From Rhodosorus marinus CCMP1338 (lineage: Eukaryota; Plantae; Rhodophyta): DNA of 64,000 nt. The notes under the pieces were generated by a model. It saw only the letters and a program-made list of their open reading frames with translations, ran no database searches and was not told the DNA's origin. This document shows, piece after piece, positions 1,407 to 28,024 of the stretch (position 1 is its first letter; every line of letters begins with the position of its first letter). The stretch covers positions 2,046,001 to 2,110,000 of the forward strand of contig JAMWBK010000005.1 of assembly GCA_029953675.1 (NCBI GenBank), read 5' to 3'. The position numbers were made by a program, and so were the translations under genes.

Positions 1407-1775
1407 ACCCTGAAGTATCATTCTGGAATGATGCTGATACAGATCACCCTGAAGTACTTACGCGTGGATAGGTTTCGGGTAGTAGGTGAGATGTTTCAAC
1501 AAAGACGAGTTTTGCGTTATGATAACCCTGAAGTGTTTACGTTGTTGATGAACTCACCCTGAAGTGGTTCCCTTTGGATAGGTTTTGGGGACGTGGTGGT
1601 GGTCTTGAAGTATCTCCGGGAGACGGTTATTGATTAAGTCACCCTGAGGGATTTTCCATGTCGATGTCTTCTTAGATGCATCCCCCTGAAGCACTGCTGC
1701 CATGACCGTATTTTGGGTACAGGTCACCCTGAGTTGCACTGAGTGGTGAAAATTAGAGGAGCCACCACCCTGAAA
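1407..1775 (+). promoter_or_regulatory. Cluster A of the ACCCTGA(A/G)G motif (8 copies, unique spacers) between the divergent clpB and FHA genes
   Basis: Copies at 1407, 1446, 1525, 1556 (ACCCTGAAG), 1641 (ACCCTGAGG), 1683 (CCCCTGAAG), 1726 (ACCCTGAGT), 1767 (ACCCTGAAA). The repeat is directly visible; a regulatory role is inferred. Confidence 0.6.
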
Positions 1776-1884
1776 CTGGATGGAACGTGGATCGCTTGCG
1801 TGGAGATGTTAGTGGGACCGGAAACAGTTTTGAGCTATGTAATTGTGGAAGCGATTGGTAGAGATCTAAGAAATTTGTTGCAAG

Positions 1885-2636
1885 ATGTTAGTCCACGAGA
1901 TGATACCGCAGGGTGCGACCAAGTTTGTGATTCCGGATTGGTGTGGGAACAGCGACCCCAAGTTTTGTTTCACTGTGCATAAAAGGACCGGTCAAGTTTG
2001 TGATGTGGTGGAGTTTTCGAAGGATCGAGGTGCGTTTTTCCTCTTGAATCTGAGATTCTCCGCAATCCCCTGCTTTTCTATCGCTTGGATAACAGTCCAT
2101 AAAGTTCAGCATGTTGAAGTTTTTATGTGCTCTTCCGGGCAGGATTTCTTGTGTTCGGAAGAGACGTTGGTTGCTGCGATATCTTTGTCGGGCATGCGTC
2201 AGTTTCTCGGCAGCACGCGGCAGTAGTATGGCATAAGAACAACTACTGCTACCTGCTCGACCTCGAATCAGAGTCTGGGACGAAGATCAACGGTCGAGTG
2301 TTGGAACCCAAAGTGCCGATGATGATCTACCCAGATGACAAGATCACTTTCGGGAAGTCCTCTCGATTACTCAAATTCAGTGACAATTTCGAGAAGGCGC
2401 TTTACGAAAGGGAAGCATACTTGAGGGATGCTCCAGTTTTTCCAGAATTTGCGGAGGACGTCGAGGGGAACCTGCTTGAAGGGAAGAAAGCGATCTCCCC
2501 ACCACCCCCGACATACCCGACAGCGCAGGAAGCGATGGGAACAGACTACTCTAGTGAGCAGCTAGCCGCAGCACAACCGCCACCGCCAGCCGAGCAACCA
2601 CCACCTCCGCCGCCACCACCCCCAGCGCACGGCTAA
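1885..2636 (+). CDS. FHA-domain protein (NIPP1/kanadaptin-like N-terminus) with Pro-rich tail; one intron ~2030-2141
   Basis: Exon 1 MLVHEMIPQGATKFVIPDWCG...KDR. Exon 2 has the FHA signature FGR...HASVSRQHA...DLESESGTKING and ends in poly-Pro. Confidence 0.85.
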
Positions 2637-2880
2637 GTACACACAAAGCCATTACAGTGGATATTTATAGAGGACAGATTGCTCTAGCTCTGGAACAAGC
2701 TTAGCCACTGAGTATCTTGCTCAGACCTAAAAGATGACAAACGCACATTCCTGGGAGTGTTTCGAGCTATAGCTTCCATGTTTGCGAGACATCCCCAAGC
2801 CCCATATTTATTTTGAAAACCATAGGATTGATAGCAGCATTCAAAGCCTACGACTGCAACGGCTGCATATCTTCGAACTT

Positions 2881-25333: not shown

Positions 25334-25498
25334 TCGAAGCTCGAATCCGACTATGTGCATGGCAACGCTGAAGGCATCGAGCTGCTTGCCCTGCCGTCCT
25401 CACGGGGTTCGCTTTTTCTGAATCGTGCTAGTTCCAGAGCCTAATGTCGGCTGTGATTTCGTCCGGGCAGTGTCGCGTTGTACGGAGGACAGCCGACA

Positions 25499-26732
25499 CT
25501 AGTCCAGCTCATCCCAGATTTCTGGATCGTCGTCGATATCTACCCATTTTCTTCTGCTCTGCTGCTGTGGAAACATGGTAGCTTGAAATCCTCCCTCGAC
25601 TCCATAGACTTCTCCCGGCTTCTTTCCCCAGCCGAACAGTGCCGGGTTTCCTCCTACAAGCGTAAAGTCAGAACCGTTGGGGAACGAGGGCAGCTTGAGT
25701 TTGATCCTTTCCACTTCCTGAAATATTCAGAACAGTAAAAGAGTACTCCGGTTATCAGTAAGCCTCATTCCGAGAGTATTCTGAAGGCATGGCACAGTGG
25801 CATCTCTTAGACTTACCTCCGCTGGTAAGCAGTTTCCCACAACATAGTGAAAAGCCCCTCCGAAGCGACGGGCGGTGACCTTCGGGACACCCAAAGAAAT
25901 TAAAAGGTCTGGCTTCAAAGACAGCCCTCTCCACAAGTCCTCATCCTTTGGACCTTTAGTCAAGTGCCAGCCGGTTGGAACGTCGATTGAGACCGTGGGC
26001 CGTTCGCTGTTTGCGATCTGTGAGGCAGGGAGGAATGAGGAAGAGTGTAGAGCAGCTCAGATAGCCGGCAGGTTAGTAGAACCCTCAAAATTGCTGCGCT
26101 CATCTGCTACCTTCTCAATGACACTCATATAGGCTTGGTCCAGCTCGTTGTTGTCGTATTCCACGCCAACCATGGCATCGATGTAAAAATTGAAGTGGGC
26201 ATCAATTGGACCAGGCACAAAATCCAGATACTTGAGCCCAGCGTCGCGCACCATCTGTTCATCGAAATCCCTGACAGCAGAGGTGTACAATTGATTTGTC
26301 ATTGAGAATCGCCTACGCGTTTCGAAGGTCGGCCTTTTCTGTAGCAGTCGTGAGTACTTACGGATTGTCATCACAGGCGAGTACAGTCATTTCAAAACCC
26401 ATCTTGCTCAGCTCTTCCGCAGCACGAAATCCTACAGTTCCCTTATCTCCCGTACCGCATATGGCTATTCCTAGAGGATTCGCAGGTTCTGGAAAGCAGT
26501 CTGCGATAACCCTAGCGCTGGAAGTGCCGAACCGCGTCATCAGCGCCATTTTACCCCCTTCATACTCACTGTAAACCTTATCCAGTAGTTCCTTCGCGTC
26601 TTGAATGCTTGCAAACTGTTCCAGAGACTCCTCCGGCTTGTCTGCGCTCATTCGCACCGAACAGGTCATCCGCCGTCTCAACTTGACCTGCGCCAAACCC
26701 AGGCCATCAACAAACACATTTACAAATCCCAT
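25499..26732 (-). CDS. YjeF_N / NAD(P)H-hydrate epimerase-like protein with probable plastid transit peptide
   Basis: MGFV start; ICGTGDKGTVG at the GxGNNGGDG position; YIDAMVG; VSIDVPTGW; KPDLLISLGVPK...FGGAFHYVVG; LKLPSFP. Confidence 0.75.
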
Positions 26733-26857
26733 CGTGTATATGAACAAACCAAACACGGAAGAAGATAAGATTGACACTTTGTATGTACCACAGAAGCAGC
26801 GGCGTCCCCCGAAGTGAAGTACCGCTGTTAATTTCATAGCAACATCTGGCCATACAT

Positions 26858-28024
26858 CTTCAGGGTTATAACTTCATTTTTCCATAGTCGTTAGGCGCTT
26901 GGATTTATGGACTTCAGGATTCTTTTCAGACCCTTCAAGCGACTATGCCATCGCTTCAGGGTTCCAAGCAGAATACAAACGGGGAAAAGTCTAGCCTTAG
27001 GCTTGGAGGCGACGAGAAATAGGGTCAGTGTAGACCCGCTTCAATAGTCCCCACATCTCTATGTTACGAGTTGCACGTGGAAACTACTTCAGGGTTACAC
27101 GAACTGGGTTCGCGATCCATCTCGTTCTTCACCTGGTTTTCCATTGTCTACAAAGGTATTGAAAAGTACAAAACAAACATTCTGCCTCGATCCTTTCTCG
27201 GCGGAAACAGGGCTTTATGCATATAAAATATTTTTAACAAGCAGCTTCAGGATCGTAGCCACAACGCAGAATCGTACATCTTGCTTCAGCAGAGGAAAAC
27301 TGTGTTCTCCATGCTTGTGGGCTTAGACAATACTTGATCTACCTCCTCAGCGTCGTATAGTGGTTTTCAGGGCCGTGTCGCGCATATCTTCTGCCTCAGG
27401 GTGGGAATACTCCTGATAATACTCGGGTCTGAACTATTGTTGCACTCTCGTACGCGCACTACCTGCTTCGATACATGCAATCCGTGCATCTACGAGTAAG
27501 TTTCGGATTTTAATCCATAGTATACTCCTGCAGATGTTTATACTGGCAAATTCCGATACGGCAACTCATCCGCCATATCACGCGGTCCCATAACCCTAAA
27601 CTGCTGCTTCAGAGCTGATAATTGAGGTGTGAACTTTGCTCTGGAATTTGCGAACAACTCCACCTTTACAGAGGGTCGGCCATCTCTGGTCACCTTTCTC
27701 CATGTCGGCGCTGCTTTGGTACGAACAATCTCAGACAGGAATATAGGACTCGACGCGAGTTCTATCTCCATATCCGAACGAGTTCAATCTATCAGATTTT
27801 TCAGCAACCATGTTGGCACAGCTTTTGCTATTGAGTGGATGGAGCTGTTCGATCGTATGAATTAATTTCAGTGCTCGGCAGCATTTTCAAAGTCTGGCTA
27901 CCCACACCTGCAACTGTTCATGAATTGCGGACGCAAGGCTTCGGGAAAGATGCGTGACTTTGAGCGTGAGTATTCGTGATCCTGATAAGTTCCAGTTGGC
28001 CTGATGATGAGCACGCTTCAGGGT
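26858..28024 (-). promoter_or_regulatory. Cluster C of the motif, on the opposite strand
   Basis: CTTCAGGGT at 26858, 26954, 27087, 28016; CCTCAGGGT at 27394; variants CTTCAGGAT at 26912 and 27245, TTTCAGGGC at 27365. Confidence 0.55.
27538..27771 (-). CDS. Possible exon of a hypothetical protein
   Basis: 77-aa protein-like ORF; no family recognised. Confidence 0.2.
   Translation of the reverse strand: MEIELASSPIFLSEIVRTKAAPTWRKVTRDGRPSVKVELFANSRAKFTPQLSALKQQFRVMGPRDMADELPYRNLPV

Follow-up and report, generated by a model that had tools for sequence, protein, structure and literature searches.

The locus described here is a 64-kb window (the whole stretch of DNA analysed) from the red alga Rhodosorus marinus CCMP1338; it corresponds to positions 2,046,001 to 2,110,000 of the 3.19-Mb contig JAMWBK010000005.1 in the nuclear genome assembly GCA_029953675.1. 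Within it, a ribosomal DNA (rDNA) unit lies among protein-coding genes, and a short asymmetric motif, ACCCTGARG, recurs in the intergenic DNA on both sides of that unit. The nuclear genome comprises 31 Mb in 13 large contigs and carries 8,392 genes (PMC10250338). The assembly has 17 contigs in all, and protein-level identity for the MMETSP strains of Rhodosorus is 88-95%. Given that the window is more than 1 Mb away from both contig ends, the locus is chromosome-internal. Gene models are those of the deposited annotation, including NDN08_001595 (FHA) and NDN08_001599 (LSG1), and Pfam scans of the open reading frames (ORFs) agree with them. Together, Rfam and the gene models place one complete rDNA unit at the locus with unique genes on both sides, in line with a preliminary description of this DNA that had called the unit solitary. 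Over the 64-kb window Rfam identified nothing besides the three rRNAs, and ARAGORN called no tRNA genes. No 5S gene is present in the window, and 5S is therefore unlinked to this rDNA unit. The genes, the rDNA unit and the motif sites are collected in Table 1, in which T1 to T4 and T0 denote single rDNA-proximal sites and A1, A2a, A2b and A3 denote arrays of sites.

Table 1. Genes, rDNA features and motif sites of the locus in window coordinates; one-mismatch sites differ from ACCCTGARG at a single position.
Feature	Position	Strand	Remarks
ClpB/Hsp78	ATG 878	−	
A1	1303..1775	+	9 sites: exact at 1407, 1446, 1525, 1556 and 1641; one-mismatch at 1303, 1683, 1726 and 1767; divergent ClpB/Hsp78-FHA intergenic region, left domain edge
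FHA (NDN08_001595)	1885-2636	+	ATG 1885
P450	2881-4800	−	
FSH1	5731-6471	+	
PRMT5	7043-9745	−	ATG 9745
rDNA with both spacers	9746-23225	−	no gene called
T4	10383..10391	+	1627 bp downstream of 28S 3′ end, 638 bp upstream of PRMT5 ATG
T3	11394..11402	+	616 bp downstream of 28S 3′ end
T2	11641..11649	+	one-mismatch (ACCCTGAAA), 369 bp downstream of 28S end
T1	11968..11976	+	candidate main RNA polymerase I roadblock site, CTTCAGGGT in rRNA sense, 41 nt past 28S 3′ end
Short 3′ external transcribed spacer (3′ETS)	11977..12017	−	between 28S end and T1
Solitary rDNA unit	12018-17665	−	28S 12018-15346, 5.8S 15589-15742, 18S 15872-17665 (Rfam)
5′ETS and putative RNA polymerase I start region	17666..18283	−	TATGTAAGGGAGAGG at 18283-18269, AT-rich block 18300-18400 above
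T0-like site	18423..18431	+	oriented as T1-T4, 758 bp upstream of 18S
Tandem duplication	18462..18720	−	about 135 bp, 83-89% identity, immediately upstream of T0-like site
A2a	21297..21777	+	9 sites (6 exact, 3 one-mismatch), gene-free upstream spacer, 3.6-4.1 kb upstream of 18S
A2b	22420..22587	+	3 sites (2 exact, 1 one-mismatch), 640-800 bp upstream of LSG1 ATG
LSG1 (NDN08_001599)	23226-25333	+	ATG 23226
YjeF_N	25499-26732	−	ATG 26732
A3	26858..27402	−	7 sites (4 exact, 3 one-mismatch), YjeF_N-NOL9/Grc3 divergent intergenic region
Rightmost site	28016..28024	−	191 bp upstream of NOL9/Grc3 ATG, right domain edge
NOL9/Grc3	28215-30374	+	ATG 28215

Our count returned 22 exact copies of ACCCTGARG in the window, 17 on the + strand and 5 on the − strand, and reproduced each coordinate and strand listed in the preliminary description. 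That description had expected about one copy by chance, and 100 dinucleotide shuffles gave much the same value (1.31 copies, with a maximum of 5 and none reaching 22). In addition, matches with one mismatch number 62 in the window versus 29 expected, and a surplus of about 12 of them lies in the same arrays and the same orientation as the exact copies. Between 28 and 64 kb such matches occur at chance level (18 observed versus about 16 expected). The sites thus total about 34, made up of 22 exact and 12 one-mismatch copies, in a motif domain of 26.7 kb (1303-28024). As the preliminary description had stated, no exact copy occurs in 28.1-64 kb; the same is true of 8.1 kb beyond the left end of the window, which holds DNA polymerase delta, a UBC gene, the rest of ClpB and two intergenic regions, and of 7.7 kb beyond the right end. 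With no further copy on either side, the domain is bounded. The sequence covered amounts to 79.8 kb, or 0.26% of the 31-Mb genome, and all 22 exact copies fall within 26.7 kb of it (P = 3.5e-11). The motif-free flank of 53 kb includes about 20 promoters, which bears out the earlier view that the motif is not a generic promoter box and shows that, within the 79.8 kb examined, it is not spread evenly through intergenic DNA. Inside the domain, which is 57% genic, each of the 22 exact copies lies outside both the deposited gene models and the rRNA genes (P = 1e-8). The strand polarity noted earlier also holds without exception: exact copies on the + strand span 1407-22579, all left of 23 kb, and those on the − strand span 26858-28016, all right of 26.8 kb. 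This perfect split has P = 1e-5 with 22 independent sites and P = 0.04 when only 9 clusters are counted.

Alignment of the 22 copies defines a conserved block of about 13 positions (−2 to +10), [C/T][A/C]ACCCTGA[A/G]G[C/T]A, i.e. YMACCCTGARGYA, outside which the information content is zero and the sequence is random. On the − strand, which has the sense of the rRNA, the site becomes CYTCAGGGT; the positions 3′ of its GGGT are degenerate, and specificity resides 5′ of GGGT, in CYTCA. Information limited to 13 positions amid random flanks indicates independently maintained sites, and the perfection of the motif in 22 copies within such flanks implies selection on the site itself. From sequence, the pattern looks like a set of independently maintained binding sites for one putative protein. 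Neighbouring sites are irregularly spaced, at 31-158 bp, with 10 of the 22 neighbour spacings falling at 37-49 bp, about four helical turns. Consistent with the earlier statement that the spacers are unique, Tandem Repeats Finder (TRF) detected no tandem repeat at the arrays, and we found only two local partial duplications, 1444-1488/1554-1598 and 22345-22417/22434-22506. A satellite or tandem repeat is ruled out by the irregular spacing, the random flanks and the absence of an array in TRF. Sensitive blastn among the arrays, both spacers and the rDNA yielded nothing but short matches, about 20 nt long, with the motif at their centre; the spacers are unrelated and homology is confined to the motif, which rules out a duplicated spacer or a transposon fragment, the latter a possibility the preliminary description had named. 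No second shared motif was found in the arrays, nor were copies of the promoter region or a spacer promoter found inside them. A literature search on the motif string matched only primers for green fluorescent protein (GFP) and short hairpin RNA (shRNA). Of the loci that a metagenome scan for triplet arrays brought up, at least 120 in number, none resembles the window; all are regular satellites or short-period coding repeats with spacings that are multiples of 3, 9 or 11. An ORF inside the 28S, used as a probe for other rDNA loci, gave no match. Three contigs with LSG1 homologues start at that gene and offer no upstream flank for comparison.

The copies nearest the rRNA genes are placed as the parts of an RNA polymerase I (Pol I) terminator would be. 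Such a terminator comprises a site for a roadblock protein, a T- or pyrimidine-rich tract with a pause 15 bp upstream, an upstream RNA hairpin and, usually, fail-safe copies (PMC12366685, PMC3045592). At the Rhodosorus locus, the 28S 3′ end is followed at a short distance by T1, whose orientation to the course of Pol I is fixed. The sequence from the 28S 3′ end (12018) reads ggatatatacattttcactttatccacctctgccatcagtg and continues into CTTCAGGGT at 11976-11968. Over the 30 nt before T1, the non-template strand is 40% T and 73% pyrimidine, the latter being the highest value of the 22 sites; by the same 30-nt measure, T2-T4 and the array sites have no pyrimidine tract. If the pause falls about 15 bp before T1, the predicted 3′ETS is about 27 nt long. 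Beyond T1 stand three further copies on the + strand, as expected of fail-safe sites (11641 with one mismatch, 11394 and 10383). The RNA upstream of T1 folds into a weak AU-rich stem of 7 bp (GUGGAUA...UAUCCAC) in addition to the 28S terminal helix (z = +0.16). T2 is the sole site with a clearly stable upstream hairpin, at the 3rd percentile of background, and the upstream hairpins of T3, T4, T0 and the arrays are at background level.

Two further features were observed in this 3′ spacer. Between T3 and T4, at 11145-11304, a 51-bp unit is tandemly duplicated with 98% identity and then followed by an inverted copy, with 41-nt arms that are 83-85% complementary and 20-71 nt apart. This repeat could form a long hairpin or cruciform; it may serve as a fail-safe hairpin for termination, act as a fork barrier or have no role. 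In addition, a 163-codon ORF at 10161-10652 on the − strand overlaps T4; it is unannotated in the deposited genome and probably spurious.

Upstream of the rRNA genes, a single copy occupies the position of a T0 site. Sites bound by Reb1/TTF-I-type factors include a promoter-proximal one, and T0 sites typically lie about 150-220 bp upstream of the Pol I start in the same orientation as the terminators. By analogy with plant Pol I initiators, we take TATGTAAGGGAGAGG at 18283-18269 to be the likely Pol I start region. A start at about 18278, suggested by its TATGTAAGGG-type sequence, would put the T0-like site at about −145. The stretch upstream of T0 is the classical position for spacer promoters and enhancers whose transcripts end at T0, and the duplicated repeats of about 135 bp at 18462-18720 are candidates for either. 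Farther up the same spacer there are 56-bp repeats at 19467-19526 and 20118-20306, with 2.7 tandem copies at 80% identity and a dispersed copy 651 bp away. A 28-nt piece of this repeat recurs with 75-82% identity at 3555-3582, a position inside the P450 gene model (2881-4800) and just downstream of its long ORF.

The majority of all copies are found in the arrays A1, A2a, A2b and A3, which lie in divergent intergenic regions of RNA polymerase II (Pol II) genes; A2b also adjoins an 89-bp tandem duplication. When the direction that a site would block is set from T1-T4, every group points towards the next promoter firing that same way: A1 towards ClpB, T1-T4 towards PRMT5, T0, A2a and A2b towards the rDNA promoter, and A3 together with the 28016 site towards NOL9.

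We propose that a single sequence-specific DNA-binding protein recognises YMACCCTGARGYA and acts there as an orientation-dependent roadblock for the solitary rDNA unit, a reading to which we give about an even chance. With moderate confidence, T1 would be the main Pol I terminator behind its pyrimidine-rich tract, T2-T4 would be fail-safe copies that keep Pol I off the PRMT5 promoter, and the 18423 copy would be a T0-type promoter-proximal site that stops spacer transcripts coming from the upstream duplicated repeats. For the rDNA-proximal part, the best reading is a candidate Pol I terminator and T0 system, the first from a red alga, which would be an element of a known kind with a new site sequence. 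Our confidence is low for what follows at the arrays. A1, A2a, A2b and A3 may be closely packed binding clusters that serve as polar barriers or anchoring points, each stopping polymerases bound for the next co-directional promoter (ClpB, rDNA or NOL9). As with S. pombe Reb1, replication forks arriving from the opposite side might be stopped as well, and looping mediated by the factor might tie the flanks to the rDNA terminators. S. pombe Reb1 is a barrier to Pol I on one side and to replication forks on the other; it also occupies Ter-like sites elsewhere than in the rDNA, brings sites together in loops and is an activator at some Pol II promoters (PMC5368702). Since it offers precedent for every proposed activity, we tentatively see the arrays as clusters of polar barriers or anchors. 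Taken further, the locus would be an insulated domain in which one roadblock factor acts as terminator and T0 factor and also occupies mirror arrays up to 10 kb away, confining Pol I and nucleolar activity or replication forks and looping the flanks to the rDNA; we regard this as a real possibility and a doubtful one. Mirror-oriented flanking arrays around a solitary unit are a variant not known to have been described earlier, and the function proposed for them is conjectural.

The preliminary description had suggested that a Myb-type factor of the Reb1/TTF-I or telomere-repeat-binding kind uses the motif to terminate, insulate or organise an rDNA domain. This stands in part. In its favour, the motif is a regionally confined, oriented element tied to the rDNA unit, and the rDNA-proximal copies have the T1-Tn and T0 positions of Reb1/TTF-I systems, with the GGGT core in the rRNA sense. 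Against it, the Reb1 consensus GGGTAA is unmatched beyond GGGT. With only GGGT in common, the site would be Reb1/TTF-I-like in its working and cannot be counted as a Reb1 consensus site. Termination is plausible only for the rDNA-proximal sites, because the three large arrays have neither pyrimidine tract nor hairpin; a role of the arrays in insulating or organising the domain is conceivable.

Several observations weigh against the roadblock reading. Array sites lack a pyrimidine tract and an excess of hairpins and are therefore not complete terminators. Even near the rRNA genes, the hairpin is clear only at T2 and weak at T1, and the site does not follow the consensus of the family, sharing GGGT alone with Reb1 GGGTAA and matching no Sal box. 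The Pol I start on which the T0 assignment depends is itself deduced rather than mapped, and no binding protein, and no Myb factor of the MybAD-plus-MybR kind, was identified for the putative site, although no search of the R. marinus proteome as a whole was made for one. The P450/FSH1 divergent promoter region (4800-5731) lies inside the domain and has no site, exact or one-mismatch, in array orientation. Neither the blocked-direction rule nor a rule that treats the sites as sense-strand promoter elements accounts for this region, and because of it a model in which all promoters are protected does not hold generally. No rightward transcription that A3 would have to stop is apparent. Finally, arrays may also exist at unrelated loci, as only about 80 kb of 31 Mb was covered.

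The alternative that survives best treats the arrays as homotypic cis-regulatory clusters for Pol II genes (FHA, LSG1, YjeF_N and possibly ClpB and NOL9), with orientation set by the regulated gene and the factor also used at the rDNA. A1, A2b and A3 all sit within divergent promoter regions, 110-800 bp upstream of the start codons of genes on the ACCCTGARG strand, and Reb1 itself acts at Pol II promoters (PMC5368702). The corresponding sense-strand rule fits the three arrays at FHA, LSG1 and YjeF_N but fails for T1-T4 and T0, which are antisense to the sole adjoining gene, the rDNA, and have no + gene downstream. Moreover, about 20 other promoters in the 53-kb flank, including those of Ub-eL40 and Nrap, are free of sites, as is P450/FSH1; A2a lies 1.5-1.9 kb from LSG1, and the genes flanked by arrays have no obvious common function. 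We consider this explanation unlikely, yet one to be taken seriously.

A further alternative is that the sites are mainly polar replication-fork barriers, with those on the + strand stopping rightward forks, head-on to Pol I, and those on the − strand at the right edge stopping leftward forks, so that replication would start at an internal origin and terminate at the edges. The two opposed orientation groups, which switch between 22.6 and 26.8 kb, would suit such an arrangement, and in S. pombe and mouse, Reb1/TTF-I sites stop replication forks in a polar manner (PMC5368702). Leftward forks, however, run co-directionally with rDNA transcription, which leaves the right-hand barrier without obvious benefit; A2a and A2b would stop forks leaving the rDNA, and no origin was identified. 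We judge this distinctly unlikely as the main role of the sites.

A historical explanation would make the arrays decaying spacer leftovers of a former tandem rDNA array, that is, terminator clusters of lost units with no function outside T1 and T0. A2a and A2b are indeed placed like the terminator cluster of an upstream unit in a tandem array, and the local duplications show that arrays can grow by slippage. This account is nevertheless improbable, as blastn revealed no homology between the upstream and downstream spacers or among the arrays and no 28S remnant, intact unrelated genes separate A1 and A3 from the rDNA, and 22 perfect motifs in random flanks imply selection on the site.

The preliminary description had also raised telomere-like seeds, a reading that extends to breakage or excision signals that would allow release or healing of the domain in the form of a linear rDNA minichromosome. 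The polarity of A1 relative to A3 (C-strand left, G-strand right) is that of chromosome ends, the CCCT/AGGG core is telomere-like, and the assembly holds four small contigs of less than 40 kb (PMC10250338). The copies, however, are isolated, non-tandem 13-bp sites, thirteen of those on the + strand, exact or near-exact, lie in the domain interior, the CCTCAGGGT variant interrupts the T-rich part, and the chromosome-internal position of the locus speaks against it as well; we hold this very improbable. Red-algal telomeres are poorly known (PMC3622300), and no Rhodosorus telomere repeat is reported in the genome paper, its supplements or an algal telomere survey (PMC10250338, PMC3622300). [quoted passage not shown]

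Other features of the region were noted apart from the motif. Several nucleolar or ribosome-biogenesis genes neighbour the rDNA, namely LSG1 (23226-25333), NOL9/Grc3 (28215-30374), a gene at about 33.0-34.6 kb for a protein with three HMG boxes in a UBF/Hmo1/plant 3xHMG-like architecture, and an Nrap/Utp22 gene just past the right end of the window (18060-20456 of the right-hand locus sequence). Yeast Grc3 is needed for Pol I termination (PMC2948184). This clustering of nucleolar and ribosome-biogenesis genes by the rDNA could be coincidence. Downstream of NOL9, a gene with an NKAP-like C-terminus contains an imperfect long GAA repeat of 36 copies (31870-31983) that encodes a Lys/Glu-rich tract. 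Histone H3 (44425-44835) has a protein sequence identical to that of H3 in many animal genomes, insects among them.

We know of no red-algal Pol I terminator or rDNA boundary element described to date. Organisms with dispersed, low-copy rDNA include Cyanidioschyzon, some fungi and apicomplexans, and for such organisms the coexistence of one highly transcribed Pol I unit with packed Pol II genes is a question in its own right. The Rhodosorus locus offers a compact test case at base resolution, with about 34 copies of a 13-bp site, clear polarity and sharp edges. Should the flanking arrays prove functional, they would constitute a sequence-encoded nucleolar organiser boundary. If the insulated-domain reading is true, the boundary system would be minimal, sequence-defined and of a kind not known to have been described in any eukaryote. 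Were the motif to prove common in other parts of the genome, what is left would be a first red-algal candidate Pol I terminator together with a general Reb1-like factor, which would be useful but ordinary.

The known systems closest to the rDNA-proximal sites are the Pol I roadblock terminators, represented by Reb1/Nsi1 in S. cerevisiae, Reb1 at Ter2/Ter3 in S. pombe, TTF-I at the Sal boxes T1-T10 and T0 in mouse, and Rib2 at the T3 box in Xenopus. In common with these, Rhodosorus has an oriented short site that closely follows the 28S 3′ end and a pyrimidine-rich tract, several fail-safe copies with matching orientation, one more copy close upstream of the putative promoter, and a GGG(T) core in the rRNA-sense strand. 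Yeasts likewise carry GGGTAA on the strand with the sense of the rRNA. Within GGGTAA, the core of the Reb1 consensus, Myb-type domains contact GGG (PMC8970589). The Rhodosorus site CYTCAGGGT, however, is neither GGGTAA nor a Sal box, its 3′ETS is very short (about 27 nt, predicted) and has no strong dedicated hairpin, and the rDNA unit is solitary rather than tandem. Unlike in those systems, about 28 more copies form arrays in Pol II intergenic regions as far as 10 kb away, with those of the right edge in inverted orientation.

For the arrays, the nearest comparison is again S. pombe Reb1, where one factor serves both rDNA and non-rDNA sites and pairs them by looping, as in 'chromosome kissing' and in the tethering of the mat locus to rDNA Ter sites (PMC5368702); on the Rhodosorus side such pairing is presumed. 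The extra Reb1 sites of S. pombe are single and genome-wide, whereas in the sequence sampled here the copies form dense arrays of 3-9 near the rDNA. The plant telo-box (AAACCCTA), which occurs in promoters of translation-apparatus genes, resembles the Rhodosorus site in its ACCCT core and its 5′ intergenic location. A telo-box would be general in ribosomal-protein and ribosome-biogenesis promoters, and the site is absent at Ub-eL40, at Nrap and at all promoters of the 53-kb flank. It is thus specific to a region and not to a regulon, and, as far as the sequence tells, it is not a telomere-repeat unit. Two opposed groups of one asymmetric site that bracket a domain also recall E. coli Ter/Tus and convergent CTCF loop anchors. 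This likeness is an analogy only, as the organisms, proteins and scales are unrelated and most of the Rhodosorus + sites lie inside the domain that the opposed groups enclose.

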